From Klebsormidium nitens (lineage: Eukaryota > Plantae > Klebsormidiophyceae): a stretch of DNA of 64,000 nt. Below the pieces are notes generated by a model. It was not told the DNA's origin. It did no database searches and saw only the letters and a program-made list of their open reading frames with translations. A program made the translations under genes and the position numbers. Below are positions 18,201-45,363 of this stretch, piece by piece. Each line of letters begins with the position of its first letter. The first letter of the stretch is position 1. The stretch is from NCBI GenBank assembly GCA_000708835.1, contig DF237114.1:62001-126000 (forward strand), written 5' to 3'.

Positions 18201-18513
18201 CGATTGGAATCGCTTTAATCTGTCTTGAGACTCGGAGCAGTTAGTAAGGAATCTGTTCGATCAGGCGATGCAAGCAAAAGCTTGACGTGCTTCAAAAAGA
18301 CACATGTGTGCTGGTATAACTCAAATTTGAACCAGAGTGCTTCCATTCAAAAAGACCTTCACTGTCAATTGCCAGTGAACAGTGCCCACTGCAAGCCTGC
18401 TTCCCCAATCAACCATTTGCCGCACCGTTGGTTCCTGAATCTCACTTACTGTCACGCAGTGACGTTTTGACTCAGCGATTGTGATTTTAACAACTAAAGG
18501 TGCGTGCATGCAG

Positions 18514-21500
18514 GTGCATCGGGGTCGCGCCCCTTGGCGGGGGGCTCGGAGCACTCCCTCAGCAGCCGGCGGTCCCTCAATTGGGTGCTTCCCCGCAGCA
18601 GTTCACCCAGGGGCTTCCAGTCTCAAGCCCAGTGCCACAAGGCCTCCCCACTCCAAATGGACTTGGTAAGTTCTGGTGTTTGGAAGAGAGAGGCTACTCC
18701 CTGAGACATTGTGTGCCTGTCTTCAAGGTTGGCCTGGAAGTCTGTAGACTTATGGGCCAGGTGTTGTGACAGCTTCTTATGTGAACGAGGCTCACTCGAA
18801 GGTTTTTGAAGAGGCTGTAGCATCTATTATCGATCTCGAGTACTTTCCTTGCATGCAAAACAGAAGCCTCCGAAAAGACGAACGAATTTGGTCGACTTCA
18901 TTGCCCACTGATAATTGTCGTATGATTGAGAAGGACTTCCTGCTTTAGGTATCGGCCATGACTTCAGTTCATCCGATCCTAAGTGCTCCGACGCCCTGTG
19001 GACCTATTGTGCTTAGTTGATCACCCGTCAATGAAACTCTCAAGAAAGTTGACTCGCGCAAAGCCGAGACCCTGCCATCGTAACAACTGCTCTACGCTAA
19101 ACGTCTGTCCTGAAAACGAGAGAATAGCTGAGGAGAAATTGCGTCATTAAACGAGGGCATCATCAAACGAGGGCAGCTTATTTTGCAGGCGGGCAAGCGA
19201 CCGGGCTCCTTCCCACCGTGGAGAGAGTGGTTGGAGTCGGCGGCGCACCGGGAGTTTCCGGGGCGGGTGGCCTAGGTAACGCCCTTAATCGACACACATC
19301 GTGTTCAGCTGGCACCAGATCTCTGCTTTTAAGAACCGGATTATGCTCATCCATGCAGCCTTACACCAGTGACTTGGAAGATATAGCTGGCTGCCGTTGA
19401 GTCCGGCGCAGGAAGGAACGAAGAGCTTTACGATTTTCAAACAATTTCAGCTTTTCTGTAAAGCTGAGCTGGATTCGAACATTGATTGTCCAGCCAGAAT
19501 AAGAGTGTTTCGACTCGAAGATGACTTGCAACTGTGTGCCATTTGTTGACTTATGAATGTTCGTAAGTGAGGACGTTACCTTGAAAGGTTCGATTGGGTG
19601 AAGGTTCGCTTTTGTGAATTTATATCCACGTTAACGCAAGTTCACTTCGTGAATGCGTTAGGGATTCCCAGCTTGGCTGATGCTAGTAAGGCACATACCT
19701 TCCTGTGGACGTTGTTAATTTCGACGCAGCGTTTCAAATATCTTGGACGCAACCAAAGTGTGACTCTTGTACCACTCAGTCAAAACACAGTCCAGCTACG
19801 AGCCCTTGCCTACTTTCTGCACCTAAGCCTCGATTATCAGCGCGGCGCGACTTACTTTCGCAAATAAGGAAGCTTCTCGAACGCTTTTTAATCGCGTCAA
19901 CCGTTCTCTCGAGCTTCGTAGTTGTCTTCCAGTCAATAGGGGCCCTGTTGCTCTCTCTCCGTTTGTTACAGACGTTCCCGATTCCGTTTGTCATAGATAT
20001 TCCGTTCCGATTGTCAAACCCGTTCCGTTCCGTTTGTCAAAAATTTTTCGTTCCTTTGTTTACAGGTGGCGGACAGGCATCTGGGCTCCTGCCGACCGTG
20101 GAGCGCGTCGTTGGTGTCGGAGGGCAGCCGGATCAGTCGGGCCAACAAGGTAAGGACACGTGTCAATAAGCGTACCGCCATTTTTGCAACTGAGCTGGAT
20201 CACAAATCGAGTAAAGAGCGGAGAGAACGCGGTTGGCTGGGCCTCTCACTTTTCGACTGCCCACATGTCAAAATTGATAGTACAGCTGCGGTCTACTTGG
20301 TCTACTTTCAGTCGGCAGCTGTTTTAAATCCCCCCGACTTCTATCAGATTTGTTGCGACGTTGACACAGCTCGCCTCGTCTGTTTTACTTTGTCGGGACG
20401 TCCACTTCCACAGACTGTCCGACTACCACAGATCGTCCTCCTTCCTTATACCTTCTTCAGTGAGGACTCGGAAGCTGTATTTGTGTTAGCTTTTTGCCCT
20501 ACGTACAAATTTTCTGATGTACATTACAAAACGTCGTATCCGTTCCTACAGGCTACGCCCAGCAGCCCGGTGCTTACCAAGGCCAGAGCTCCTACGGCAA
20601 CGGCCAGGTTCAGCAGACGACAGATCCCTACTATGGGCAAAACGCGAACTATGGAGTAGCCCAAGCGCCTGGTAAGCGTTCTGCCGGCTAGTCGCAAACC
20701 AATGGTCGGAAAACTTTGGCTGAGGTTGAGTTCAGAGGATCTTCGCCAGAAGCTGCCCGTCGTTGTTTGTTTGTACGAACCGTTTGTTTGCTGCACATTT
20801 GGCGACGTAACGCTTGTACGTGCGTCTAAGAATTCCGCACCCAGATCTCGGGCAACATGCGGCGTATGTGTCGTTCTGCGCAAGCAGTAGTAGGGTTGTT
20901 ATTGCTTTTTGAGAGGAGCGGTTCTTCTGCACAAAGGGCTCTACAGTAGCCTATGGCTGTGGTTGTGAAAGCGACAGTTTTTGAGGGCATTTTATGCGCT
21001 GCAGGAAACCAAGCCGGTGGGCTCCTTCCGACGGTGGAGAATATCCTGGGCGTTGGAGGCCAGCAGGGAGGGCTCGGAGGCGTTGCAGGTAAGTGCTCGT
21101 ATGTGCGGATTTTGCTGCATCGTCCCGGCAAGGGCTGCGTTTACTTTCGCCTAACGAATAAGTGTGCCCCTTGAAAACAAACAGCTTGAATAGACAAAGG
21201 TATTAATGGGGAAAACTTAATCTGAATCAAGGCATTCTTGTTTCGGCGTTCTTGCGGATTTTTGTGGTGTGGGGCTTTGTCCTCGTTGGAGTGCCCTTGC
21301 AAAACTCGACACCGCCCATGACGCGTAAAGCGTCCACCGGTATAGCGTGTGCATCCTCATGGTCCTTCTTCTGTGTCGATTGATCGTCCTGTCCCCTGAA
21401 ACCGCGGGCTGGTAGGTCAGAACGAATCTGGTCAATTTGTCCCCGCCCTCCAGCTTCAACGCAATCCCAAACTTCTTCGATGATTTTCACATTGCCTAAT

Positions 21501-24500
21501 GCGCGCTCTTGTGCAGGTGGGCTGCCAGGTGGCGTCGGGAGTGCCGTCCCCGGGGGAGCCCTCCCTGGAGGTCTTCCTGGAGGTGTAGGGCAGCAACAAG
21601 GTTAGTTTTTTATTACCACACGTTATACGAAAGATTTCGGACTCAAACACCTATCTTAAAACCCTGCAGACTCGGAAGCATGTCAAAAAAGATGGGAGTC
21701 TTCAGAGGTTCCCTCGGTCTTCATCTCGCTTGGAGGCGGAAACACTACTCCTTATGCATGAATTTTAAGTTTCAAGACTGAAGGTGCTTCCTTCCTTCCT
21801 TGCTGAAGATAGCTGCGGAGCGAGAGACAGCTGCCGGTCGCACGGGGGGTCGTTGAGATTTGCGCAAGCCCGTTTGCAGTCTGGAGAACGCTTCTGCAAG
21901 GGTTGTTGAGAACGTGCCTGCTCTTTTGTTTTCAGTCAAAAAACACCGAGCTTTGCTCACGGTGGTGTTGCTTTCTTGGTCGCAGATTATGGTAACCAGT
22001 CCGGCGGTAGTCCGGCTACCGGCCTGCTCCCCACCGTCGAGAGAGTGGTGGGCGTTGGGGGCGACCAAGGTGACTTTGAGGGACAATTCAAAGAGTCGAG
22101 AACAGAAAGATAGGACTAGTGGATCTTAGAACCCCGTTGCGAGAATCCTTACTGTTGCTGGTCACAGACCTTTATATCGTACTCGAGTTCGCACACATAT
22201 CTGTGAGTTTTTAATGAATTTTCAAATGAGCTTAATGAGCTTAATGAGTTTCAATGAGTGTATCTCGTATTATGTGAACGTGCTCTCTCGCAGGTGGGCT
22301 TCCAGGAGGTGTCGGATCTGCCATTCCGGGGGGTGCCCTTCCTGGAGGCGCGGGCCAGCAACAAGGTAGATTTGTAAAGTACTCGATAAGCAATGGACTC
22401 ATGCAAGTATGTGTACGTAGAAGTGCATGAAAACCACCGTCAAGAATTATGAGGCTTCTTTGGGTCTCCTGCATTTGTGATGTTTCTTCTCAAAAAACTC
22501 AACAAGATGTTAGTTGTCTGGCAATGACTACTTCATTGTATATGAACAGTAGCTTTGGTAGCCCTCGTCTTGACAACAATGTCAAGCAGCGATTGTGTTT
22601 GTGGAGCTGCAAAACGACGCAGGGCGACTGCGTCTGATATCCTGGTTTCGATCTTTCGAAATTTAGTTCTGTGATATTTCAGAGGATGGTCCGCGAAGAT
22701 TGATGATATAACGAGGGGCGCGATCAAAGGAACTGGGTTGAGCAACCAAGAATTCGAGTGCCAAACTGGAGTTTTCACAATAATCAAAATAGAGTCGTGT
22801 TGAACGGCTGGTGACGTTTTTTTCGCAGGTTATGGCAACCAGCAGCAAGGCGGTAGCCAGCAGTCCGGCCTTCTCCCCACCGTTGAAAGAGTGTTGGGCG
22901 TTGGGGAACAGCAAGGGCAGCAGGGAGGCTTGGCAGGTGAAAGCGAACGCATATATATTGCATCGATTGATTGGGTGGACAAAACTACTTCTTTTTGCGG
23001 CTTTTTGTGGATTCAACCCTCTCGTAGGCTTCGTTCGTTCGATTGAGGGCGTTCTGGATTTTTCCCATATTGTTTGTGTGAGCGTTGCCCAGAGCAGGTC
23101 CGCCTTTTACAGCTTGATCTTTGCCGGCCATCAGATCGGGTATCCGTTTCAAATCAGATGTTAGATAGCTAGCTGCTTGCCTAAAACCATCTTCGTCCCT
23201 GAGTGTCAACTGTTAGTCCTCCAAAGAGGCATATCGACTTCATTAATTCTTTGGACAACACACTTTTCAAAAGGTACCCGATCATTGTCAGACTCTTCAA
23301 ATGACTACGGTCACAAAAGACTTTCTTTTACTTTGCTCAAAACCTGCAACCGTGCAGGTGGGCTGCCAGGTGGTGTTGGTTCAGCCATTCCTGGGGGCGC
23401 CCTTCCTGGAGGCGCAGGGCAACAGCAAGGTTAGTTCGTGGAAACTTGTTTGTGTTCGAGGTGTAGAACGTACGGTCAGACTTTGATTTTCGCAACTGGT
23501 CTCGTATCTAGCGAGAGTGCCGCATTCTTAAGAATCCCGGACAATCAACTGCCGCTCAGGAACTCACCATTGAGTGGTAGCTTCACAACCCATGCCTGAT
23601 CATGATACCAAACGATGCAGATGAAAAGAATGGAATGGATTCTGCTAATTGTTGGATGTTGTGCAGTGGATCGACACTTTTTGCACAATCCCGGAATAGT
23701 GAGACGTTTCCGCAAGCGTGATAACAGAACGCGCGCGCTCTCTCAAACACGCGAGCCCGTGTAATTAAAGAGCTCGTACCTTTGTGCTTGCAGGTTACGG
23801 TAACCAGCAGGGTGGTAACGGGCAGCAATCCGGCCTTCTCCCCACCGTCGAAAGAGTGGTCGGCGTTGGTGGGCAGCAGGGAGGTGTAGCAGGTAACAGC
23901 TGCGCAGTTTTCTAAAACCGCTAATTTGTTGAAGTGCGGCATCGTCTCCTTGACCTTGGTCACTTTACTTTCCGGCCTCTCGCGTAAAGATGGTATTCAG
24001 GATCTTCGTCAAGTCGGTAGAATCTTTCAAGCTCAAACCCTTCCGCAGTATGGCTTGTCTATACTCTTTGCTTTCTGCTTTATTCCAACTCACAGGTCCA
24101 TACGACTCGCTAGTTGCTCTGCATCTTCCTTCTCTTCGCGATTGTGGAATTCCGGGCTGCCACTCTTGGGTCTTTCGTGCAGTTTTCTCTAACTCGTCGA
24201 CTCTGGTCCCACAAAGCTGCCTTATTTCCTTTGTAAGTTACTCATCGCGCCCTCTCTCACAGGTGGGCTGCCGGGTGGTGTCGGGTCTGCCCTCCCTGGA
24301 GGCGCTGGACAGCAACAAGGTTGGTTCTCAGTTTCTACATTAAGCACTTACTCTGAGCCACGTCTCTTCATGACTTGTTGAATTGAACGTGCAAGAACAT
24401 ACTGTCGCTGATGAAATCCAGGATCTTGCCCTTGCTTATTCGATTTATTGCATGGCCAATCTGCGAAGCTAGCGAATCCTCTTTTGGCGGTACTACTAGT

Positions 24501-27500
24501 CCCTGCAGCGCCCTTGCTTATTCGATTTATTGCATGGCCAATTTGCGAAGCTAGCGAATCCTCTTCTGGCGGTACTACTAGTCCCATACTATATCGTCGT
24601 TGCTAAATGAAAGCTGCGCAGCGAAAGCTTCCGTTTTGTCACCAGAAGAAAGAAGTATGCCCGAGACCTGTATTGCAATTTTGACAAGGTTGCTGCAGCG
24701 ATGGAAGTGAACGAAGCACGCGCTGAATATCCCCCGTATCGAATCATGCACATAAACTCATATGAGCAAACGGTACGGTTTCGGTTCTACACAAATTCTG
24801 ACACGTTGCTTGCAGGTTATGGCAACCAGCAATCCGGCGGTGGCCAGCAGTCTGGCCTCCTCCCCACTGTTGAGAGAGTGGTCGGCGTCGGAGGACAGGG
24901 AGGCTTGGCAGGTAATTTTACACTTGTAACATGCTATTCCTTTCTCCGCTCTGCGCTATTCCGCTCTTCGCTCTCGCGCTATTCCGCTCTCGCTCTCCGC
25001 TCTCCGGTCTGCGCTCTCCAGCTCTCCGCTCACCGCTCTGCGCTCTCCGCTCTCGACATCATCTCCGCTCAAATCGGTTACAAATTTTGGGATCAGTGTC
25101 GTGCATGCACTTTGCTTTCGGCTTCACCATCCGGATTCGCAAAACCTGCCACGTCATCCAAACGTCGTACAACGCGCGCGCTCTCGCAGGTGGGCTGCCC
25201 GCTGGTGCAGGGTCTGCCGTCCCTGGAGGAGCACTCCCCGGAGGCCTTCCTGGAGGAGTGGGGCAGCAACAAGGTGGGCTTACAGAGGTTCTAATCGTGG
25301 AATTGCACATTCGGTTAAACCTGGCCGCCTAACCAGAGTTCACTTTGAGCCGAACACAAAACTTACCTTTGAATTTAGATCCTCCGATGATCCGCATGCC
25401 TCGCATCGAACGGCCCAAGTTCTGCGGCTCGAGAAAAGGTCTGCGACGGGGTCGATCGGACTCGGGTCAGGCGGCCAGGTTTGACAGAACCTGCAATAAA
25501 CCCATCTTGAGCCCATTCTCGAGTCTGTCTCTCTTGTGAGCTCCCGATTGAATGTGCCAAGGGATTTCGGACACCGATGCGGGAAAAACCCTGATGATAA
25601 GCTCTCCCTGATTGCGCTCTTGCTCATCCACTTAAGGCGGGTGGTTCCGAATTACTCCCCTAGCGACCGTAGCCCCATACATCGGTGTTGGCATGTGAAA
25701 GCTGCGAGCGAAAGGTTCTATGTGCCGTCAGAGAGCTCAGTGGCTATTCGAACGGAGCCTGCCCGATGAAACTTCCTACCAAAACGGATAAAATCGAAGC
25801 ATTCTGCAGGCGTTTCAGGACACCGAGTTGAACGCTCCTTCACCCAATCGTTTATGAGCCTCTTAGTGATAAAGCCGATTCGTGACGACTTGCTCGCAGG
25901 TTACGGCAACCAGCAGCAAGGCGGCAGCCAGCAGTCCGGCCTTCTCCCCACCGTCGAGAGAGTAGTGGGCGTCGGGGGACAGCAGGGAGGTGTGGCAGGT
26001 AATTTCACGCTTGCAATACAGCGCTACTCTTCTTCCTGGACGTTCTAACACGCGCCGGACGTCTTCTCTACTCAGGGTTAAGCTTTCAATGCGTCCCTTC
26101 GCAAACCTGACTTGTCTTTTGAAACTATCTCAACGCGCGCTTGTTTTGCAGGTGGGCTGCCGGGTGGTGTCGGGTCGGCCATCCCGGGGGGAGCACTTCC
26201 TGGAGGCGCAGGACAGCAACAAGGTTAGCTTTTACATACACTCGGGACTTAATCTATGAACTCATATCCTATGCTTTAGTGGACTCCTATCTTGAATGTG
26301 TCAACATCCTGACTTCGAGCGATCCACAAATGGTCGTAACCTTCTTGCCCACTTCAGGTGGTGGCTCTGAATAGTCACACGTCGATGTTGCTTTCCTAGA
26401 AGCTCCGCAGCAAATCTGTTTGCCGTTCGTATGCTTCTTTGAAGGAATTTCAATCGATGTTTGCCTGAGCCCGAATGCAGCTTTGAGAAGCCTTGTTCAG
26501 TAGAATCGATAAGAACGAAGTACGCGTTCAAAGAACACAAGGTCAGATCCTCGAGCACACGCTCGAAGAACACTGCATTCAAACCCTCCATTACACCATC
26601 TCGTATGAGCAGATGATGTGCACGTCGTTTTCAAACCGTTCGTAACTTCTTGCACGCAGGTTATGGCAACCAGCAGCAGGGGGGTGGCCAGCAGTCCGGC
26701 CTTCTCCCCACTGTCGAGAGAGTGGTGGGCGTTGGGGGACAGGGAGGTCTGGCAGGTGACTAAATCACTTCCCAGAGGCGGGTCCGCTCTTTATTGACCT
26801 CGAACCGTTCTCCTGTCTACTGACGTACGTTCATATGAGCCTAGCTGAGTGTTTCGTTGTCGATTACGGCTGGTAGGATCAGTATTTGCCTGCAGTTTGT
26901 TTGCCGAGTCGTACGACTTTAGATCTGACGTTTTTGCGAAATCTTTGACACTCTTTTCACGAACGCGTGCTCTCCCGCAGGTGGGCTGCCGGGTGGTGTC
27001 GGATCTGCCATCCCTGGGGGCGCAGGACAGCAACAAGGTTAGTCAAAACACTTTACCCGGTTTAGTTTAGTGACTTCACATTGTTCTTTGAAAGTTGCGG
27101 AGTGAGAGCTTGCCCCTGCCGCTGACATGCAATGTTTGGAAGAGCTGGATCATACATGGGTTGCCCAAGCCCGCCTTGTCCACTGAAAAGCTTCCTGCCT
27201 AGACTGGTGCGAATAATATTGTGCGCATGTTTAGGAAACTGTCATCAAAACGGTGCATCACTTCTTAGCAGATAACGTTGCTTTTGAAACGATTCGTGAT
27301 AACTTGCCCGCAGGTTACGGCAACCAGCAGTCCGGCGGTGGCCAGCAGTCCGGCCTTCTCCCCACGGTTGAAAGGGTTGTAGGCGTCGGGGGACAGCAAG
27401 GTCAACACGGCGGTATGGCAGGTGAATCTACAATCCTGATGCGGATCTACTCACCGCTGACGTTAACGTCACGCTTTCGGCTTACGTCCTTTTGACTGCC

Positions 27501-33500: not shown

Positions 33501-36500
33501 AAACTAAGCGCGAAACTTTTACACCGGCGTCTCGTGTTACGTATGGGTCTTCGAAGGGTAACAGAGATGCGTCTGGAACGAAGTTAAGTGCGACCACAAC
33601 TTCCTGGTCATCGCTGCAAAAGGAAGGAGGACTATTGTTGCGGCGGCCTCAAGCCGAAATACCAACTTAACCGTTCCTCCGCACTGATTCAGCGTCCCCT
33701 TAAACCACCAACCCACTGCTTTTGAAGACGTCATTTGCGCCAGCCTGTTAACCAACCTCTTTAAGAGAGTTTCTAATCTACGCGTTTCTAAGAGGTTGCG
33801 TCTCCAGTCTTCCGAATCCTCCATCTTTATACCCTTTGGTTATCCTCATGTGCAGGCGGTCAATTCAACCAAGGCGGTCAATTCAACCAGGAGCAGTTCA
33901 ACCAGGGTCAATTCAGCCAGGGACAGTTCAACCAGTTTGGACAGGGCGGCGAGGGTTCCGTGATTACCGGCGGTGCTGTAGGCGGTAAGCACCTTCACGA
34001 CGCTTCTCCTTGAGACATCTGGTATAAGATCGAAAAAGTGGCCCGGAATCTGCGGTTCAAAAGCGCGCAGCCGTATGCCGCAGGAAAAGGTCGAGCACCC
34101 GTTGACACTAACTCAAGACAAGCGGTGGCGTAAGCTCTGGTTCAATTCAAAATTAGAGGGTATCGAACAGGTTTTGTCTGGACTGTTCACCCGATTCTTC
34201 AGACGTTCCCGCGTCTACAAACAAGAGCTTCTGTGAGCAGGCGCGACAGGTCGAAACTAGTGGCAGTTTCGTTTGACCACCCCGCACTTCCTTCGGTGTC
34301 CCCAGCTCCTTCTAAGCAACTCTCCACTCCGTTTTTTTCGTCAGCAATCCGGATGCAATTTGTCTTTTCCTTCTTCCCAATTAGCCTGTACGGAATAACG
34401 CAGCAACTTCTACGAGCTTCTGTTGGGCTTCGATTCCAATTTTGGAACTTTTGGTGTGGCATGCAACTCTGCGCGTGTTGGAACGGAGAACAATCTAGAA
34501 TAGGATTCAAAAAAAATCGAAGTTAGAGGTATCTAAATCTCACTCACTGCTCTCACAGGAGCGGCGTTCATCATCGTTCAGAGTGCCAACGGCATCGAGA
34601 CGATCCGCGTCCCGCAGCAGACCGTCGGCTCGGCCCTGGCTTACCTACGTCAGCTCGGGTTCGGCGAGGGCGTGCTCCTGGGCGTCGACGGAGCGCAGCT
34701 GACGTCACAGAGCATCCTGAGTAGTGGCGGACAGTACTTCTTCCGCACCCAGAGTGAGCAGTGCTTGCGTCAGCCCACATATTCCCGTATTGTTCTAGGA
34801 AGTTTTCTGGCAGAATGGTACTCGTGTGGTTCACAAGCGGTTCCGTTTGTTATTGCCATTCTGAGAAGGGTTATGCTTGAAGGCCTAGGTCCCCCTATCA
34901 CAAGAGTGTAGGCCCTACTAAACGTAAAATTGGTCTAACGGTAGTTTTCCCAGTTGGGCGCTAACCCTCAAAGCATCCCCCCCTGCACTTAACACGTGAT
35001 TTGAGACGGGTTTGATTCACTTTGCAACAGTCATAGAAGGATCACCATTTTCTTTCGACCAGATTGTACCCGTTTTGCAGATCGGATTTGACATGCTTGC
35101 CGCACGCATGCCTTGCTAATTAGTTTGGCTCGAAACTTTCGAGGAGATAGTTGCTGATGTATCATTCTCCTGTCACAGCTGATTTCAACTCATGGGGCTC
35201 GGGAGTAGCTACGGGGAGCAGCAGCGGATTCGTCACTTCCGGCCAGCAGGGCTTTGGTTCCGTCCAGCAGGGCTTCGTCGGCCAGCAAGGCTTCGGTTCC
35301 GGCCAGCAAGGTTTCGGATCCGGCCAGCAGACCGGCAATTTCACTTCCGGCCAGCAAGGCTTTGGTTCCGGCCAGCAGACCGGAATCACTTCCGGTCAGC
35401 ATGGCTTCGGTTCCGGCCAGCAGACCGGTTTTGGTTTCGGCCAGCAAGGCTTCACTTCTGGTCAGCAGAGCGGCTTCACTTCCGGCCAGAGCGGCTTCGG
35501 TTCCGGCCAGCAGACTGCCTCCATTACGTATCCTGCACCAGGTTTGTGTCTTTTGTTTTCTGAATTGACCCCCAATTGTTATTATGTCACGCGCTTCTGG
35601 TTACATCCCTATCACGGTAGGACTCGGCTGGAGAATCAGCTGAGTCTATTAACAAACAAGGATCAAACGCGCAGCTCGTTTCTTTTTCGAACGTCATTCG
35701 TACTTCGTAGAGATAGTTTTGATCTTTCGGCATGTGGAGTAGTGGTGCCGTTTATTCCTTTTTGTAAACCCCTCGAAAGCGTGCAGTGCAATTACCCCAC
35801 AGCTGGTAATATCCGGTGAGACCGACTCTCCGAACCCAGAGCGCTCAACCGCATCCTTCACCCGATCCTCAACCTATTTCATGACCCGCTTTCTAACCTC
35901 TAAACTCCGCTGATTTTAGGACCGTTTCAAATCATCCAACCCGGTTCATAACCTAATTTTCTAACCAAATATTCATTTTCCGTTTTGCAGGACCGTTCCA
36001 AATCATCCAGCTGCCCAGCCAGCCCGTGAATGTGACTTCGTTCCAGACTGTGGGCCAGATTCTCCAGATCCTGGCCACACGGCCGGGCTACGGACCGGGC
36101 GTGCTTCACGCCGGTAACGGCGTCGTTCTGCAGCAGAACGAGCTGGTGCTGCCCGGGAGGGACTATTTCTTCGTCGCCCAGTCGCACTTCTCAGGTAGGT
36201 CGGGTGATTCGAAGTCAAGAGTCTTGCGCGCATGTGGGCGACGCAGGACTTCGGCGCCGTAGTACCTGCCAATAGGCAATCGGATCCCTCCACTAGAACC
36301 AAAACTGCTTTTTTTCTCGTGAAGTTTTCAAATAACGAAACAGAACCCAATTTGACCTTCTTTCTGAGCCAGCTTGTCACCTAGTAGGATAAGAGTAGGG
36401 TTGGTACAATGTAAACATGGTCTGTCCATTCAAACAAGTGGACGCAAAGGCAACTCTTCGTGGGAAGTCCAATTCAATCGAAATGAATTTTTTTCATAGC

Positions 36501-39500
36501 TGCTCCATCCTCGCTAAATCTACGTACGTTTCTGCGTACTTTGGCCCGAGACTGCAGGTCGACGACTGACGGATACCCTCGTATTCTGACAGCTCGTTCT
36601 GGACCTTCAGCGAACTTGATTTGTTTTCAACAGGAATCTTTCTCTGCGGATGCAAGACTTCTCCAGGATCTCATCGCCTCGCAAAAGGACTTTTCTTGCG
36701 TCAGATTAATACTAAGCATGTGTGATCCCTTGTGGTTTGCAGCATCCAGCTTCAACTGGTTCACGTCGGGCGGCTCCACGGGAACGGTGGGCACTTCCGG
36801 TGGCATCGGAGGTCAGACCGGTACGTTTTTCCACAGCCACTTTTTTGGATTTTCCTTTGTTCGATTCTATGAAGTAGTTGTAAAACAACGCTCGTCAAGC
36901 AGGGGAGGCCGTTTCCTGCTTACTCTGCCAAGAAGTGACGACACCGAATAAGGCCGAGCAAAGACTTCATGATCAAAAAAACGAGAAAATACCTTGAGGA
37001 CCAGCCAGTAAAGTCTTGGGGATTTGCATTCAAGAATGGTAGCTGGCAACCTGGAATTGTACCGACGACCCCGTTCTCGAGTTCCAATCCGCCTCCCATT
37101 ATGATGCGTAAACTCCCACGTATCTTCAGAGTGATTGCCTGACCGTCTTTGTAGCTGAAGTCATCAAATGATTGACTCCCCTCCGATCAAGCTTTCTGCC
37201 CACGCGGTTCAAAAATGCAAACTCCCCTTGATTCGGCGAGAGTAACCTGGATTTGCCAGGAAACGTCACCCATCTGACGTGTGATTGCGTTTCCTCGCAT
37301 CTGGATCGTTACGGAATGTCACCCATCTGACAAGAGTCACTGCGTTGTTTTGCTCGCAGGTAACCCCGCCACGACCAGCCCCGAGATCCGCATCACCAAC
37401 CCCCGGGCCGGGGTGTCCATGATTGTGCGCGCGCAGACCGCGGCGGAGGCGCTGGCCACGCTCAAGCCGTTCATGGGCGAGGGAGTGCTTCAGTTCCCCA
37501 ACGGAACGCTCGTGAACCCCAACGCCTTCCTCTCGCCGGGGCTCGTGTACACCTTCGTGCCTAGCATCCCCAGTAAGTCGTTTGTCCTTTGAATATTCTG
37601 CTTTCCAAATCTGAGGATGGCGAATGTGAATCGAAATGTTCTAGCAGCAGAAGCAGAGCCTGCTTACCGATTGAAGAAGCAGGTGGACGTGCAAACGCAG
37701 TGACTTTTAATGTGTATTGTGATGATCAGAGGAGGAAAGGGAAGCTCCAAAGAAGTAATGAGCGGGAGTGCGGATCTATAAGGTCTCCTCACGACTGTTG
37801 TGTGCCCATGTGCAAGAGCAACACGCGTCGAAGTCTTCTCGTCTGAACTTCAATGGTGAACTCAAGTATCGTTGAGCTTTACATCGTTGCTTTTGGGAGA
37901 ATGTAACGTCGGTTTAGGAGGATGTGACGGTTTGCTGATGACGCACGTCACTAAGAAAGCAACCGTTGGTACAGGCGGTATTGTGCCTGGAGGAGGCCAG
38001 CAGCCTGCCGGCGGTATCGTGGGTGGAGGTCAGCAGCCTACCGGCGGTATCGGTGCAGGTGGGTATTGCTGAATGAAAGTTGCACCCAGAGTTTACCGTT
38101 TCATTCTCATTCTTCCAGAAGGGGAGTCTGGCGGTCAGAAGACGCTTCGCTGGGTCTAGCCTCAAACTACGAGCCATGTTCAAAGACAATGCGCAAATCG
38201 CCACCGCTCCACTATTCTCAGTACGTTGAACCCAAGCAATGCGCACAATCCAGCAGTTGGCAACAATTGGAGTCACGGACGCCAGAAGGAAAAGTTAAGA
38301 GTTTCTTTCGTGGCTGCTCAGCGAAGCTTTGATGCAGAATGAGCCGATCACAGCTCGTTGTGCATCGTATATTTGTTCTGTTCTCCGCGTGATTTGTGGA
38401 TGGTGTCGAGCGTCGGATGCTTCACGGGTCCCATCATTTTGTAGTCGAGAAGAAGTTTCGAGGATGCGTGACTCAGAAGATGCTGCCCAAGTTGCCTTGG
38501 CGTAGCTCCCCTAGTAGCCTCTTCCTTCATTGATCCGGTTACTCTGCCGATAAACGCTTGATTGCAGAATAAGTTGTAGATGAAACCTGGCAGGTCTTTC
38601 TGTTCATCTTCCTGAGAGCACAATACCTCCGAGCGTTCTCGCAAGTGCAACTTTGCAAATCAGATTTCTATCTTAAAATAGTCACTGAAAGTCATTCCCC
38701 GTAGACTTGCATGTCAGCTTCCAGGGGAAATCCAGCGGCCAATTTATCGGTGTTCCATTTGGGCCACATTCGAATTTTCAAAAACTAGTGGGCACTTGGA
38801 CGCTCAGCGAAAAGTTGAAAGTGCCCAGTTGCTCGAACTGTGACCTTAACCGCGCCCAATTCACGTCGCCGCAGGTCCGACAAACGGCGCGGCGAAGGCT
38901 ACCGGTCAGGTGGTACGCATCACCGACCCCTCGGGAAATGTTGTGGCGACCGTCGAGCCGCAGACCGCGCAACAGGCGCTGGAGTACCTGAGGCGCAGGA
39001 TCGGGGACGGAACTCTGGAGTACCGGAACGGAACCGGATTGGCGCCCTTCACGCCTCTGACCGCTGGGATTGACTACGTCTTCAGACCGGTCACGCAGCC
39101 AGCCGTCCGGCCTCCGGCACCGGTCACGCCACCCACAGGTACGTACCGGATGTGATTGCACGGTTCCAACACGTCTGCTCCTAAAATCTTCACATCCCAA
39201 AAGCCTCAATGTTGACCTCTCGCTAATGTCGTGGGCGCTTTCACTGGTGACGTTGGTAGTTCTAAGTAATTGAAGACTTGCTTATTGTGTGAAATTCGCA
39301 CCCGCTTCTCTGGCAACCGGCTGCTGCGGTAATCCGCGTGAAAGTTCTTCTAGAAAGGTTCACGTTGAGCGAACGTACCCGCACAGGTGTCCCCGCTACC
39401 TATCAGGACACACAGGAATCTCTTCCCCTCACTTGCTGCCGGTTGTGGGCGCCCGACTTGCTGTTCATTACTAATTAGTTTCACCCGGTGTTTCCTAAGC

Positions 39501-42500
39501 ATTTTGGCTTCAGAAGGCTCGTCAGCCATGAGGTCAGCACGCGTCGACAGAGATGGCCACGGGTGGGGCCCACTTCAGCGGCTCTGTCGGCTGCTGATCG
39601 AGCGGGCGCATCCTTAGCTAACAACTTATGAAGCTGTTGTAATTGCTGAAGAACGTTCCGGTCCACATGATGCCAACTTTGACTAACTAGACAACTTTAA
39701 ATTCCAGGGATCGCTCAGCCGCAGCCCGTTATTCCGGCGCCCGTGTACCCGCCGCAGCCCATTTCCCCGCCGGAGCCCGTTTCCCCGCCGGAGAACTTGG
39801 TTATCTGCCCGCCGGCACCCCCTCGCCCCGAGCCGGTTCCAATGCCGATCCCGGTTAACCCGCCCGTCAACCCGGCCCCCATTAACCCGGCGCCTGTGGC
39901 CCCGCCGACCGTTGCGGGGCCCACCCTGGATGCATCGGGCAACCTCCCAGCAGACACAAAGAGTCTCCTGAGTGAGTTTTGGAAGACGGATGAGTTTTGG
40001 AGGACGGATGCTTCACTTACTTGAACACTTTTGACGACTACATAAACAGAAAGTAGAGTGACAGGTCCTCAATGAGAAGGTGTGTGCCGCTTCAAAGTTG
40101 CTTCCTCTAACGCTATTCCCTCTATGATGACCAGCAGTTCTGAAATCGCACAGAATTTTGGCGTGGAAAAGTGTCCGCGACTCCAGAGACTCATTCACCG
40201 ATCACGAAAGGTCACGCTTTCCAACGAGAAGCTCGTCAGCCAATCTTCTCCCACCAGGCCCGCTGAGCGCTAAAACCTTTTGAAATTCTCCAGGTTGAAA
40301 TCTTGCTATTTGTCTTGCTAATATGTTGACCAGTGTCCATTCTGAGGTCGCGCTTAGTAGTCATGCTTAACGACACCTTCCTTTCAGTCCACGAGGATTA
40401 ACATTCTAACTTTGAGCGGCGCAAACGCTATTGTCATCAAGCAGCAGGGATTCGCCTGAAACAGCCTGGCGGAGGATCAGCTGCGCTGATCACAAAACGA
40501 ACTGCGCGTTTAACAGACTGGTTCTCGTTCTCGTTTTCATCTTCGCAGAAATTACCGCAAGTCCTTCTCCATCATTGTCAAAAGACGGCGTCCCCAATGA
40601 TGAGACCTTGTTGAAACTTAATCTTCGCGGAAGCGTGCTCACTTCTGCTTTTCTGACGTCTCCGAAACTTTGCTGACGTCTCTCAAACTTCCTTCTCTCA
40701 GGGAACTGGGACTTCGAAGAGGAGAGTGACGCAGTCAAAGCAGCGTGCAAGAATGGGGCTTACCGCGCCGGAACCTCAAGCAAGGACATCACCTATTGGA
40801 AAATCACCAAAGGCGAGGTTGAGCTTATTGGCAGCGGTTATATTCGTGCTGCGCACGGTGACTACTACGTGGATGTCAACGGGTGGGGGAACGGCGGCAT
40901 CGAGCAGGTTAGACGCTAACGCAAACTGGGTTAACGCGTGGTTAAGCGCATTCCTCAGCGGCTGGAAACGCGGCAGTTCGAGCACGTGAATGCGCTGTTG
41001 AGTTCGTTTAACTCTCGGAAACCCAGATTAGTGAGTGCGCCAGGTGTTCTGTTCCCATTCTCAACTCTGTTCGGGTGGCTGTGGCAGAATATTCGGTTTG
41101 CTAGCTGCCAAGTACAGGTTTGAACGTCTCAATCTTGTATTGTTACCTTCCAACTGGCGATAGTGGCGCCCTCGTCTTGTGACCCATGGTTTGTGACTGA
41201 AAAGAAGGTTTTCCAGCGGGTATCTATGTTAAAACCTCATGCTGAAACCGCTATTCAATTGAATCTTTTGTCCGACCAAAAGGATCTGAACAATCTACAC
41301 GATTTCTGACCAGAGACACAGGAATCTTTTCCCCTGTTAACTATCTTTGGTCACCCGCCCTTCAACCAGCTTCTCCTTGCTAGAAAACCGCTTAACTGGA
41401 GAATAACCAAGCTCGGTGACTGCAATGTTCCCCCTTTCAGAGTGGCCTGGACCCTAACCCAACCTCGTTTCATTCATGTACCGCAGTCATTTGACACCGA
41501 GCGTGGTGCCACTTACACCGTCACCTTCTCCCTCGCGGCCAACCCCGAACACGTGGGAACCGACATCGTCCACGTGTCCGTGGGCGACGTCAGCCAGCCG
41601 TTCACCAGCACCAGGTCGCCGTTCAACAAGGCGGCGGGCCTGCCTTACCCCATTGACTGGAAGGACAACACGTTCGTCTTCACGGCGCAAGAGTCGGTCT
41701 CGACCATCAAGTTCGAGACGCCTTATGCGAACAAGTCGCCGTACGGAGCTTGCATCGACAACATCAGGATCGTCAAGGGTGAGCCGGCTCTAGCTTGGGG
41801 AGGGCAATTTGGCTGTCTGTAACCACAATGATTTTTGGCGGTTAACCATAGTTGGTTACGGGCTGGTTTGGAGCTGGTCAACCGTCCAAGGACCAGACTC
41901 GAGCACTGTGACCAGGTTTCTAACATGGCTATAACGCGGTTATTGGTCAAGGAAGCAGACTGAAGATGGGTTAGCGAACCTGGTTGGCAGCCAAACCTTC
42001 CTGTGAACAACAATAATGGTCAGATATTATACTTCTGTGGCGCAACAGTGTTTTCATCTCTGCACGTACGGGTTAGGGAGGCGGTTGCCCAGCTGCTGTG
42101 CTTCAAGGAAAGAGAAGAGAGAAACGAACATGAATCATAAGAGGGGCATGATCCTGCAAGTTATGATCGGCAGAGAAAAAACATCCCGTGTTTTCACGGA
42201 AGCAGCGCTTGTCTTGCCTACGCTCACTTCGATTTCTCATTTGCGTCTCTTCCAACTATGCAGGTGGTGTGCCGAATCCCCCACCCCGCAACCTCATCAG
42301 TGAGTCTGTTCACATCAGTTCCGGAATTTGCTGCATTGATGACGCAGCTCGTGTCTCTTTTGAACGCATAAGGCTTGCACTTGGCACACACGGTCACAGG
42401 AGGTTTTGCCTGCTAAGCAGGTTGTTTCTCAGATCTGAGTCTCGGGTTAGCGAACAGTCATCCGGGCGTCAAAATTGTTCGATAGCGCCCAAGTTAATCA

Positions 42501-44450
42501 TAGATGATTATGGGCTGTTTAGAAAGTGGTTTCCTGTTCGATGAATGAACTTTCTAAACAGCCCATAATCATCTATGATTTAAGGGCCAGAAATTTCTGT
42601 GGGTCTGTCCGGCTTTCATCTACTTTGTGGGAGACACTCACACTGCATCCAGATCTGTTGATGTCACTCGCTTACGTCACAGTCCTAGCTAATCCCACTT
42701 GAGCAGTGTGCGTCTGGTTCGTAGGTAGACGGTTTGTATCTAGTCAAATGCAAGTATCCCTTGTCTACTCGAGCGCACGTCCACAGGATTATCTGGCTCC
42801 TAAGCAGGCTGCTTATCAGACTCAGGTTTCAACAACGGCTATCGAACCTTCTTCAAAATCTGGTAGTCCCAAATTTGGTACCAGGATCGGTTCCAGCTCA
42901 CCGCCAGTTCATAAGCATCCACGCTTTGCTTGGCTATCCCCCGCTTGTCACCATCCATGGTTTAGGTACAATTCGTGATTCCTTCCTTGTAACGCTGTTC
43001 GTCCTGACTGTCCGCTCTCCACCCGCGCTCTTTGCGGTGCCCCCCTCGGACCTTCAGCTCCACGGGCGCGGGACTTTTTGATGAGCGCGCGCGCGCGCGC
43101 CTTCCACACTCTCGCTTCCAGGCGCGCGCCTACTCGCGCCCTTCAAAAAGACCCAACGCGCACTCCCGCTTCTTGCAGAGAACGGCGACTTTGAGGAGGT
43201 GACCACCACCATCGCTGACCAGTCGCAGGACTACAAAGTGATCTTAAAGGGCCAAAGTCACATCACCCACTGGGACATCACCAAGGACAGCGTGGATCTC
43301 ATCCACCGCGGGCCTTGGGGCTTCGGCCAGTCTGGGGACTACTTCATTGACCTCAACGGCAATGGGCCCGGCGCAATTGAGCAGGTGAGCGCCCACTAAC
43401 TAACTTTAATCGCTGGATCCACGCCTCTCCGTATGGTAAATAGTTTTGTCCGCACCCCTAGTTGAGAGACAGATGGGCCCGGCGCAATTGAGCAGGTGAG
43501 AGCCCACTAAGTGACTTGCATGAGCGCTGGATCCACTCTCTTCTTCTCCGCACCTCTAGTTGAGAGACGGGTCCCATTTGCGGTTCGTCAATGGCGACGG
43601 GCCCGGTGCAATTGAGCAGGTAAGAGCCCACTTACTGGCTGGATCCACGCCACTCCGTATGCTGATTCTTATTTTAGCACCTCTTGTTGAGAGACAGGTG
43701 TCCCATCCGTGGTTCGTCAATGGCAACGGGCCCGGTGCGATTGAGCAGGTCGTGAGCGCCCACTTACTGACTTAGGCGGCGGATGGATTCATGCTTCGGG
43801 TGATCTTCTGTTCTGCATCTCTGCTTCAGAGACAGGGGTCTTCTTCTCCGCACGTACCCCTATTTGAGAAACAGGTGTCTTCTTCTCCATGGTTAGGAGC
43901 CAGATCTTTCTTTCCTGCATTTCCTCTTCCCGCCGACTTGACACCGTCCCGAACGGCCAGTACACTGCACACTCGCAGTGTGAAGCCCAGCTATGTTCTT
44001 TTCTCCCGCAGAATTTCGACACCGTCGCCAACAAACGGTACACCGTCCACCCTTTCAGTGTCAAGCCCAGCTAGGTCCTTGAACATTCTCTTTTTCCCGC
44101 AGACCTTTGACACCGTCCCCGGGCAGACGTACACCGTCCGCTTCGCCATGGCGGGTCACCCCGGTCTGGGTAACAGCCGGGTCGGTCAGACCCGGCCCTT
44201 CACCGTCACGGTCGCTGACGTCACCAAGAACCTGGAGACTACCCCGGGGCGGGCCGCGACCGACATCGACTGGAAGACCGTGACGTTCGAGTTCACCGCC
44301 AAGGAGAACACGTCGACGCTCAAGTTCGAGAGTCGGGAAACCAAGGACGCTTGGTGGGGCGCGTACATTGACAACGTTGCAGTGACAGAGTCTGCGCTGG
44401 CTGGGAATATTGCGGAAGTGCGCCCGCAAGCGAGGTTCCTGTCCAGATAG
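18514..44450 (+). CDS. Giant multi-exon Gly/Gln-rich repetitive protein with five beta-grasp-like repeats and two DUF642/choice-of-anchor-C-like domains (5' end unresolved, about 1,920 aa)
   Basis: 43 GT-AG-bounded exons join in one frame: 18514-18665, 19189-19275, 20066-20149, 20552-20671, 21005-21088, 21517-21600, 21986-22069, 22294-22365, 22829-22936, 23358-23429, 23794-23892, 24263-24319, 24816-24911, 25190-25273, 25900-25998, 26152-26223, 26660-26755, 26981-27037, 27314-27421, 27738-27800, 28023-28127, 28608-28652, 29071-29280, 29927-30007, 30468-30689, 30996-31112, 32044-32259, 33042-33101, 33419-33475, 33856-33984, 34559-34753, 35179-35541, 35991-36194, 36743-36820, 37360-37572, 37975-38058, 38875-39138, 39708-39971, 40702-40907, 41487-41778, 42264-42299, 43179-43384, 44103-44450 (TAG). 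They sum to 5,773 nt. Repeat exons differ mostly at synonymous positions. Confidence 0.85.
24428..24585. repeat. Intronic tandem duplication, 2 x ~76 bp, period 82
   Basis: GCCCTTGCTTATTCGATTTATTGCATGGCCAAT(C/T)TGCGAAGCTAGCGAATCCTCTT(T/C)TGGCGGTACTACTAGTCCC at 24428 and 24510. Confidence 0.9.
24943..25070. repeat. Intronic degenerate 7-mer minisatellite (CTCCGCT)n
   Basis: Run of CTCCGCT/CTGCGCT/CTCGCT variants. Confidence 0.8.
27672..27714. repeat. Degenerate interstitial telomere-like (CCCTAAAA)n tract in an intron
   Basis: CCCTAAAA CCCCAAAA ATTCTAAAA CCATAAAA CCCTAAAA, just upstream of the 27738 acceptor. Confidence 0.45.
32044..39138 (+). other. Five exon-encoded ~60-aa homologous domains (putative ubiquitin-like beta-grasp fold) within the giant gene
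   Basis: Exons 32044-32259, 34559-34753, 35991-36194, 37360-37572 and 38875-39138 share the pattern [VI]x[VI]...QT[AV]xxx[LV]xx[LF]...GxGxL...[ND]G..L.....[LV]..G..YxF. Confidence 0.7.
40702..41778 (+). other. DUF642 / choice-of-anchor-C-like (galactose-binding-like jelly-roll) domain 1
   Basis: LL(R)NWDFEE...ITYWKITKGEVELIG...GDYYVDVNGWGNGGIEQ|SFDTERGATYTVTFSLAANP...IDWKDNTFVFTAQESVSTIKF...YGACIDNIRI matches the family pattern NGxFE...W.V..G.VD...DLNG...G.I.Q.F.T..G..Y.V.F.LA.NP...GP.LDNV as I recall it. Confidence 0.8.
42496..42580. repeat. Perfect 32-bp inverted repeat hairpin (21-nt loop), possible Tourist-like mini-MITE
   Basis: AATCATAGATGATTATGGGCTGTTTAGAAAGT (42496-42527) is the exact reverse complement of 42549-42580. 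TTA occurs at 42494-96 and 42580-82. Confidence 0.85.
43361..44102 (+). repeat. Intronic tandem copies of the upstream exon end plus donor (3 extra) and of the downstream acceptor plus exon start (2 extra)
   Basis: GGGCCCGG(C/T)GC(A/G)ATTGAGCAG|GT ends at 43384 (functional), 43495, 43619 and 43748. GACACCGTC-containing exon-start copies lie at ~43935 and ~44011, before the real acceptor at 44102. Confidence 0.9.
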
Positions 44451-45363
44451 AGTGGGGATGTCGCGGCGGTTTGAGCGGGGATTGGGGGATGCACGAAGTG
44501 GGCACAGCAGGGAGTTGGGAATGTGTTGTGTGAGCTGGGAAAAGAGACGCGCTCGAATGCGAAGGAAAAGTTTTGTAGTAGTGTGGAAGTTGTTTTTTCT
44601 CCACATTTGGTTTGGGTTAGTGCAGCGGATTGTGTTGCGGGTTGGCGAGATTTGGGGGGCAGTTTTGGGTTTGGTTATAGCTCCCAGTTTTGGATGAACG
44701 GAGACTGTATGAGTGAAATATCTGGGGTAGATGTATACTCCAGACGTCGTAGAGTGTTTAACTTGGGTGGGGGATGGTTAGTTGTGATGCGTAATCAGTG
44801 CGGCTTTGTTGTCAGCCGGAAAACTTTGAACACGTGTACCATACCTTCAATTCCTGAATACGAAAACTTTTGATTGTTTTACGACGGTTACAATCCGTGC
44901 GATGTGGAGATGTATGATTTGCCGGTCAATTCAAATACATGGAGTAGTTTTCTTCGCTTAAGTTACAGACCCGCAAATCGCAACAATCCCGTTATGATCC
45001 ACTGTTTAAAAAGCTCTGCCCAGATCAATTCCGAACTTCAGAACGAAATTGCAGTTCAGACAGGTCTGGATGGGATTCGGACACGTTCCGGACTCACTGG
45101 ACCAAACTGTGGCGGTTTTATTTTGGACCTTATTCATTTCGAATTCGCACTCTCAGGCTGTTCGGACTCGTTCTATCCCACATAATCCATCTGAATCAAT
45201 CATTTCAGATCCAATTGTGGACTTGGAAACGTGTCTTAGTCAGGACTGAGTGGGATTCGAAAGCGCTTCTGAATCCGAGGTTCGGATCAGGCTATGTCTG
45301 TTGAGCTGTTGGAATCCGCTGCTGCGTAAAAGGCTTTGTCAAACCTCGGATTCAGTTTCGAGA

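Follow-up and report, generated by a model that had tools for sequence, protein, structure and literature searches.

The 64,000-nt stretch of Klebsormidium nitens contig DF237114.1 between positions 62,001 and 126,000 (hereafter the window, in whose own numbering all coordinates are given) raises the question of whether a long series of short, mostly repetitive coding pieces forms a single gene, how that gene is transcribed and what its product might do. The window is eukaryotic DNA of ~51% GC. A first-pass annotation, made from the sequence alone, had described here a giant modular protein, and all the elements it described were found on the + strand. The gene proved to be real, under selection, modular and transcribed in a condition-specific manner. 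Our best explanation of the locus, which as a whole we give about an even chance of being right, is a single nuclear gene of ~28 kb (16.87-44.8 kb, + strand) with 44 exons and two promoters, whose long product would act as a scaffold. What is new is the architecture, which joins an elastin-like exon array and a new beta-grasp family to domains of the known DUF642 type.

Exon model, coding frame and relatives

The exon model was built with splice-site weight matrices derived from the clear exons and by comparison with an orthologous contig. In a six-frame search, LLPTVE occurred 13 times on the + strand, from 19.2 to 30.0 kb, and each occurrence fell within a short exon. When all stop-to-stop segments were compared with one another, the A segments emerged together with nine B segments, five related segments of ~65 residues and two mutually matching pairs (40.7/43.2 kb and 41.5/44.1 kb). 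Chaining of 44 GT-AG exons produced an uninterrupted frame (5,844 nt; 1,947 codons), all of whose splice sites are canonical and which reads from the ATG at 16919 to the stop codon at 44448-44450 (Table 1). The earlier description had proposed ~1,920 amino acids and 43 exons spanning 18514-44450. A large in-frame modular gene ending at the stop codon was confirmed, but the size is now 1,947 residues and 44 exons and the start lies at 16919, two exons further 5', position 18514 being the acceptor of exon 3. The modular layout was recovered as it had been outlined, with a Gly/Gln-rich array followed by five repeat domains, a Pro-rich exon and a pair of DUF642 domains, each interrupted by an intron. 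Comparison of the introns with those of the relative for extra conserved exons added only spacer S1b (33419-33475), and a 36-nt candidate exon at 37732-37767 was discarded because of poor amino-acid conservation.

The orthologous locus lies on contig L005/L001 of JGI metagenome 3300060284, and a third genome is represented by Logan assembly L008. L005/L001 keeps the exon order from exon 1 to D5, with 72-90% DNA identity in the exons, and most of the introns do not align. Over 20 unique exons the synonymous divergence (dS) between the window and L005 is 0.40 and the nonsynonymous divergence (dN) 0.08, giving a dN/dS of 0.20, with no stops and with indels that are multiples of three. The number of A exons differs, 13 in the window against ~10 in L005/L001. 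The earlier view of a functional gene with synonymous-biased divergence is thereby upheld, both by this purifying selection on a frame that is open across 44 exons and by the cores of the 13 paralogous A motifs, in which synonymous and nonsynonymous differences (pS and pN) amount to 0.62 and 0.16.

The A-exon motif reads GLLPTVE[RN]..GVGG, and ten of its residues are invariant in 13/13 copies. Similarity between the 13 units ends at the exon borders. The A exons appear to be old duplicates that selection at the peptide level keeps. A very different possibility is that the long transcript is condition-specific noise running through a decaying array of duplicated exons, the DUF642 part alone being functional. 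The highly repetitive, low-complexity sequence would suit such an origin, as would the fact that, of 24 RNA runs listed for that stretch, only three contained the long form. We nevertheless regard it as very improbable given a frame of 1,947 codons open across 44 exons, a dN/dS of 0.20 at a dS of 0.40 from a relative that has no stops either, indels in multiples of three, and the persistence of ten invariant residues in 13 copies that are old enough for their synonymous sites to have nearly saturated.

A divergent, paralogue-like locus from the same sample as L005 (L003/L007; ~45-50% domain identity) carries a different Gly-rich exon every 770 bp, five D domains with Gly-rich spacers and two split DUF642 domains. 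One of its exons, on L007, shares the phases of exon 3 and a Cys-x-Gly start. Because this divergent locus has the same layout, the layout is a conserved design of the family. At L003 700-7100 and L007 9240-15900 the ~770-bp unit is present in at least nine nearly identical copies, each with one Gly-rich exon (..GGGATDPAGGAGAPVADGG..GVIGQLGDVV..); this tandem amplification is much more recent than that in the window.

A profile of the five D domains was searched against 1.84 billion proteins and gave 19 matches, of which 12 had an E value of 1e-10 or lower. Those that are credible correspond to exon-sized open reading frames (ORFs) called on contigs without annotation; the profile retrieved no long predicted protein with the full architecture. 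A word-indexed homologue search with exon 3 likewise returned a single exon-sized ORF, from a relative. Since the searched collections hold no predicted protein with this architecture, gene annotation misses it, as had been anticipated for any view based on ORFs.

Long and short transcripts

RNA contigs were aligned over one stretch, 38800-44600. Contigs of four RNA runs gave the GT..AG joints 39971/40702, 40907/41487, 41778/42264, 42299/43179 and 43384/44103. Contig X9#15 (3,821 nt) joins D5, the Pro-rich linker, DUF642-1, a mini-exon and DUF642-2 in frame to the stop, D5 being spliced in frame to the linker by the joint 39138/39708 in run X9. The contig carries a further 2,523 nt upstream, the first loose letters of which are the end of spacer S5. 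The modelled exons from GQ1 to D5 sum to 1,938 nt, which is less than 2,523 nt, so that X9#15 should reach approximately exon A10 unless introns are retained. Further 5', the stretch 18401-28400 was represented only in X9, X10 and X11, which belong to one study and are three of the 24 RNA runs listed, at shares of 0.12-0.13. The 20 exons in this stretch comprise 1,763 nt, corresponding to ~1,163 genome-identical 31-mers and an expected spliced share of 0.116. The agreement between these values points to the A and B exons being present in the RNA as spliced exons.

A second, shorter transcript arises from the same locus. Its contigs start at 39206 (X5) and 39215 (X12), run unspliced to 39971 and then use the same downstream joints, and a contig of X17 starts at 39558; depth over D5 is 0 in all three runs. 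X7, X12 and X14 contain 0.00 of the A/B stretch and 0.61, 0.26 and 0.24, respectively, of the DUF642 stretch, X7 and X14 being sibling runs of X5 and X12 from the same two studies. X9, on the other hand, has a depth of 0 over 39188-39575, and all of its DUF642 RNA is therefore of the long form. In the runs examined the two starts look mutually exclusive. The short transcript, which begins at an internal start near 39.2 kb and contains the linker and the DUF642 pair only, is abundant in most of the runs outside X9-X11 and much commoner than the long one, and the giant protein is therefore a condition-specific isoform. The single transcript that the first-pass annotation had assumed is borne out from D5 to the stop and by the 2,523-nt upstream extension; the much commoner short transcript was not part of that picture.

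In the short RNA an in-frame stop immediately precedes 39708, there are seven upstream ATGs, and the first in-frame ATG, at 39842, opens a 405-residue ORF without a targeting sequence. The long-form intron in which this RNA begins (39139-39707) is unusually conserved against L001 10310-10829, with islands such as those at ~39440-39470 and ~39535-39590 that would suit a promoter or leader serving the short transcript. Such islands, together with the contig starts at 39206, 39215 and 39558, the lack of any depth over D5 in the runs concerned and the runs that strongly express the DUF642 exons but contain nothing of the A/B stretch, might also be expected of two adjacent genes, namely a repeat/beta-grasp gene and a DUF642 gene with its own promoter at ~39.2 kb, the X9 contig then being a read-through or conjoined transcript without separate function. 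We consider this quite unlikely. The upstream part has neither its own stop codon nor a terminal exon; D5, which ends in phase 1, is continued in frame by the linker exon, and all the DUF642 RNA of X9 is long-form. The short RNA has the in-frame stop, the seven upstream ATGs and the first in-frame ATG at 39842 noted above and lacks a targeting signal, and in the divergent locus the D domains and the DUF642 pair are likewise found together. A single gene with two promoters, one directing a 1,947-residue scaffold and the other its DUF642 end only, would be a tractable case of isoform control.

The contigs of X17 and X18 are labelled as coming from another organism, but show no differences from the window over >1 kb. 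They are probably from the same strain under another species name, and hence provide no independent evidence of conservation.

Repeat array, beta-grasp modules and DUF642 pair

Nine B exons (GGLPGGVG...QQQ) alternate with A exons between 21.5 and 28.7 kb. The repeat exons all run from ...CAG/ to /GT in phase 1-1, a Gly codon being split at each junction, and the phase 1-1 rule extends to all A, B, D and spacer exons, with donors of the form ...G/GT and acceptors of the form AG/G... The array of ~650 residues is 35% Gly and 16% Gln, contains 16 Tyr and no Lys in 649 residues, and is acidic, with an isoelectric point (pI) of 4.84. A conserved 14-residue motif recurs approximately every 56 residues (spacing 27-70, mostly 51-63). 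In a predicted model of low confidence, the A exon is disordered except for one short helix over T-V-E-R-V within the motif. The B4-A7 intron contains an 82-bp unit repeated 1.9 times at 97% identity (24428-24585), and the intron following A7 a microsatellite of the (TCTCCGC)n type (24933-25071).

In the tropoelastin gene, hydrophobic exons alternate with Lys/Ala cross-linking exons, and the symmetrical phase-1 exons split Gly codons. At the level of gene features, the array resembles this ELN design in its two alternating exon classes with lengths in multiples of 3, its Gly codons split as G/GN and its Gly/Pro/Val/Ala-rich segments of the GGxPGG type. It differs in having no Lys/Ala cross-linking exon class and no Lys, and in being Gln-rich, with a conserved non-elastin motif, no signal peptide and no sequence homology, so that the analogy is one of gene design only. 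The elastomer-like character ascribed to these repeats consequently stands for exon design and composition and is withdrawn for cross-linking chemistry and homology. The 22-exon A/B array is a clear case of expansion by duplication of symmetrical phase-1 exons, convergent with the elastin gene.

The five D domains share the signature Q-T..(A)L..L...G.G.L...G...L..G..Y.F. An AlphaFold model of D5 based on a 16-sequence alignment had a predicted local distance difference test (pLDDT) score of 80.6, with ~90 in the core, and a strand-strand-helix-strand...strand topology. It superposes on ubiquitin, NEDD8 and SUMO with Z ~7 and a root-mean-square deviation of ~2.1 A over ~62 residues, although Z below 8 can, according to the aligner notes, reflect a common arrangement. 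In Foldseek searches of PDB and AlphaFold-DB with VIA re-alignment, nearly all of the best matches, including the best 50 PDB matches listed per aligner (Z 6.7-7.3), were ubiquitin-like structures, with deviations of 2.1-2.5 A. The D domains are thus predicted to adopt a ubiquitin-like beta-grasp fold, which is an assignment of fold and not proof of ancestry. Sequence comparison gave a different outcome: none of 16 D-family members matched a Pfam profile, that of the ubiquitin family included, at E up to 1, and D5 had no neighbour in Protein Atlas (best score 0.59). Sharing the predicted topology of ubiquitin-like domains, the D domains differ from them as five internal repeats, each encoded by one phase 1-1 exon, without a sequence match and without a C-terminal Gly-Gly. 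The earlier term of five novel repeated domains is accurate at the level of sequence, where relatives occur only on a few unannotated algal contigs, and too strong at that of the fold. The D modules form a new domain family, whose only sequence relatives among 1.84 billion proteins are exon-sized ORFs on related algal contigs. A partial copy of the start of D1 (~22 codons) lies in the upstream intron at 31822-31887, in a stretch that is otherwise unconserved.

Against Pfam PF04862, for which the gathering score is 27 bits, the C-terminal half-domains alone score 34.0 bits (E 3e-8) and 39.4 bits (E 7e-10), which places both DUF642 domains above the threshold. The best profile for all four half-domains is NCBIfam TIGR04362 (choice-of-anchor C), of which positions 2-157 are covered and which gives bit scores ~2x those of Pfam DUF642. 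Rough sums of the separately scored exon halves, against a whole-domain cut-off of 120 bits, are 36.9 + 60.8 = 98 bits for DUF642-1 and 54.2 + 70.9 = 125 bits for DUF642-2. One intron splits each domain, its position being shared by the two copies, and the protein ends 20-25 residues past DUF642-2 without a hydrophobic anchor. These profiles bear out the earlier assignment of C-terminal carbohydrate-binding-like jelly-roll domains, which are of DUF642 or carbohydrate-binding-module-like type. The description of the Pro-rich linker as extensin-like was dropped, as it has no SPPPP motifs. A PDB sequence search with one DUF642 half gave no match, and a word-indexed homologue search with the C-terminal half of DUF642-2 gave two exon-sized ORFs from relatives only and no bacterial or plant match.

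Seed-plant DUF642 proteins have ~370 residues and consist of a signal peptide and tandem DUF642 domains only. With members such as BIIDXI (At4g32460) and TEEBE (At2g41800), the Klebsormidium protein shares the tandem C-terminal jelly-roll pair scoring above the Pfam gathering threshold. It differs from them in that the pair is preceded in the long form by ~1,590 residues of other modules, in that its N-terminus, as judged by composition in a comparative 5' model, is not a signal peptide, and in that its domains score ~2x higher on the bacterial TIGR04362 profile. The bacterial choice-of-anchor C proteins provide the best-scoring profile for the four half-domains, but here the domains are eukaryotic, intron-split, tandem and part of a giant modular protein without a PEP-CTERM-type or other C-terminal sorting anchor. 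DUF642 has been described as a spermatophyte-specific family whose members are located in the cell wall and interact with pectin methylesterases (PMC6651502, PMC13516882). A literature search found nothing connecting Klebsormidium and DUF642; the tandem pair would widen the range of the family beyond seed plants and may represent an ancestral context.

Two minor features were observed in the introns of this region. The intron after the N-terminal-half exon of DUF642-2 contains two extra partial copies of the 3' end of that exon (..NG[ND]GPGAIEQV..) along with the beginning of the intron (43381-43772), and only the first donor, 43384, is used by the RNA. At 41742-42006, very deep RNA contigs from elsewhere (word depth up to ~1,250) match ~40 nt at 90-95% identity and then diverge, which points to a fragment of a mobile element, or a short repeat, within the intron that follows DUF642-1.

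N-terminus, location and proposed role

Exon 3 has no in-frame ATG, and the start was therefore sought upstream. Two conserved blocks were found there, one with the conserved ATG at 16919 and a phase-0 donor, and the other an 80-nt exon with its acceptor at 17785. In the window, L005 and L008 alike, the latter is open and its phases (0 to 2) suit exon 3, and indels among the three sequences occur only upstream of the acceptor. A longer exon 2 (17744-17864) was rejected because of stops and a frameshifting 1-nt indel relative to L005, both of which the acceptor at 17785 cures, in agreement with L008. A search of JGI metagenome contigs for the spliced exon 1/exon 2 junction gave 0 matches and was uninformative. 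An extra in-frame ATG is present in the window at 16913, 6 nt upstream of the conserved start; L008 has an extra, out-of-frame ATG 7 nt upstream of that start (at ~1028), and L005 has none.

The N-terminus is conserved in frame in these three genomes. Its first 65 residues have a pI of 11.9 and comprise 28% Ser+Thr, 18% Ala, 11 basic residues and a single acidic one, and with a maximum Kyte-Doolittle 8-mer value of 0.68 there is no hydrophobic core. A basic, Ser/Thr-rich, core-less N-terminus is unlike a secretory signal peptide and like a plastid or mitochondrial presequence. By composition, the N-terminus thus looks like an organelle transit peptide, most likely for the plastid, and the extracellular wall location proposed earlier is therefore not favoured. 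We see roughly equal odds for and against residence in an organelle, probably the plastid, and think secretion unlikely. An SRRSF sequence in exon 2 that might have indicated a Tat (twin-arginine) lumen signal occurs in the window only; it is absent from L005 and L008, has no hydrophobic region after it, and was set aside.

The first-pass annotation had envisaged a secreted elastomeric or adhesive wall protein, held on wall polysaccharide by its DUF642 pair and made elastic by Gly/Pro/Val/Gln-rich repeats. Several features would agree with it, including the similarity of the B exons to elastin hydrophobic segments, the phase 1-1 repeat exons with their split Gly codons, the 16 Tyr of the array, which could cross-link, the cell-wall nature of seed-plant DUF642 proteins (PMC6651502, PMC13516882) and the occurrence of TIGR04362 domains in bacterial surface proteins. 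Against these stand an N-terminus that in three genomes is basic and Ser/Thr-rich with no hydrophobic h-region, an array with no Lys for elastin-type cross-links and a linker without extensin motifs. In addition, neither the interval from 12 to 19 kb of the window nor the upstream region of the relative yielded a conserved ATG exon that encodes a signal peptide and has the required phase-2 donor. We therefore consider a secreted wall protein unlikely.

The exon structure, the open frame, the splicing of the 3' third, the co-occurrence of the 5' exons in the same runs, the conservation and purifying selection, and the domain identities and predicted folds are established by the data; the subcellular location, the binding partners and the scaffold function are inferred. 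The proposal to which we attach about as much belief as doubt is a multivalent sticker-spacer scaffold or tether with a glycan-anchored end. The presequence of ~65 residues, basic and rich in Ser, Thr and Ala, would direct the protein to an organelle, most likely the plastid. In the array, disordered 'spacers' of elastin- or glutenin-like character would separate 13 motif 'stickers'; many weak protein contacts would be made by these motifs and by the beta-grasp modules, and the low-complexity spacers may supply extensibility or promote condensation. The lectin-like DUF642 pair at the C-terminus would anchor the protein to a glycan.

The pyrenoid linker EPYC1 is strongly basic, abundant and constitutive, and binds Rubisco. 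The array resembles it in having a short, possibly helical motif (low-confidence model) every ~50-60 residues of a disordered chain, behind a presequence-like N-terminus. It differs in being acidic (pI 4.84) and far larger, in containing folded modules and in having RNA in three runs only, and there is no sequence similarity. No matching pyrenoid linker or glycine-rich wall protein was found described in the literature. A more specific version of the scaffold, which we put forward as a long shot, is that the long isoform tethers a glycan in the plastid (starch or another plastid polysaccharide, via DUF642) to a protein assembly bound by the 13 motifs, and so serves a streptophyte alga as a condensate induced under certain conditions or as a pyrenoid/starch-sheath scaffold, with an elastin-like exon design. 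If this were true, tandem DUF642 proteins would predate seed plants and would have begun with a different cellular role.

Several points weigh against a plastid-targeted scaffold encoded by one gene. The 5' two-thirds of the gene model rests on comparative genomics, k-mer shares and contig-length arithmetic, and the transit peptide was judged from composition. The short transcript has seven upstream ATGs and no targeting sequence. The acidity of the array (pI ~4.8) and the rarity of the long form among the RNA runs (three runs) are both unlike what is seen in known constitutive plastid linker proteins, and by analogy with seed-plant DUF642 and bacterial choice-of-anchor C proteins, which are extracellular, the C-terminal pair would fit a secreted protein better.

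The features of the gene are listed in Table 1.

Table 1 Features of the gene in the window (L005 and L008 denote the relatives described above)
Feature	Position	Strand	Remarks
Exon 1, 5' leader and ATG 16919 (MATLSA...)	16865..17029 (coding 16919-17029)	+	Phase-0 donor CAG/GTGAG; block conserved in L005 with a 15-nt in-frame indel; same ORF and donor in L008
Exon 2 (80 nt), second half of presequence, basic, Ser/Thr-rich	17785..17864	+	Phase 0 to 2; acceptor AG and donor kept in window, L005 and L008; 1-nt indel just upstream of acceptor, intronic
Exon 3, Pro/Gln/Gly-rich	18514..18665	+	Phase 2 to 1; in the coding frame, ~81-83% of amino acids identical to L005; a 6-nt indel
A1-A3, no B exon between	19189-19275, 20066-20149, 21005-21088	+	LLPTVE matches, phase 1-1 sites; each conserved in L005, no further conserved block between them
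B1-B3	21517-21600, 22294-22365, 23358-23429	+	Splice-site and phase scan
B4-B6	24263-24319, 25190-25273, 26152-26223	+	Splice-site and phase scan
B7-B9	26981-27037, 27738-27800, 28608-28652	+	Splice-site and phase scan
A4-A6	21986-22069, 22829-22936, 23794-23892	+	Splice-site and phase scan
A7-A9	24816-24911, 25900-25998, 26660-26755	+	Splice-site and phase scan
A10-A11	27314-27421, 28023-28127	+	Splice-site and phase scan
A12 (motif and QGYGQ-type tail)	29071-29280	+	A12 and A13 conserved in L005, 84-89% nt
A13	29927-30007	+	See A12
GQ1, Gly/Gln/Tyr/Pro-rich	30468-30689	+	Phase 1-1; conserved in L005
Exon X, unique His-rich piece	30996-31112	+	Phase 1-1; 87% nt in L005
D1, beta-grasp-like	32044-32259	+	93% amino-acid identity to L005
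Spacers S1, S1b, S2, Gly/Ser/Trp/Asn- and Gln/Phe/Asn-rich	33042-33101, 33419-33475, 33856-33984	+	Splice sites and frame conserved in L005; S2 with a 42-nt in-frame indel
D2, beta-grasp-like	34559-34753	+	
Spacer S3, GQQGFGSGQQ-type repeats	35179-35541	+	Tandem repeat, period 21/45; phase 1-1; conserved in L005
D3, beta-grasp-like	35991-36194	+	
Spacer S4	36743-36820	+	
D4, beta-grasp-like	37360-37572	+	
Spacer S5, GGQQPxGGI repeats	37975-38058	+	Donor confirmed by loose end of RNA contig X9#15; acceptor conserved in L005, which has a 33-nt in-frame deletion
D5, beta-grasp-like	38875-39138	+	RNA joint to linker in X9
Leader of short transcript, inside long-form intron	39206..39707	+	RNA contig starts
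Pro-rich linker (36% Pro)	39708-39971	+	In-frame RNA joints on both sides
DUF642-1	40702-40907, 41487-41778	+	RNA joints in 4 runs
Mini-exon (36 nt) between DUF642 domains	42264-42299	+	RNA joints on both sides in 4 runs
DUF642-2	43179-43384, 44103-44450	+	RNA joints; frame checked
3' untranslated region, end approximate	44451..44818	+	Contig X12#1 continues 218 nt past 44600

A neighbouring gene lies at 56476-58799 on the + strand; inspection of its ORF translations by eye indicated a Ser/Ala-rich N-terminus followed by a haloacid-dehalogenase-like hydrolase body.

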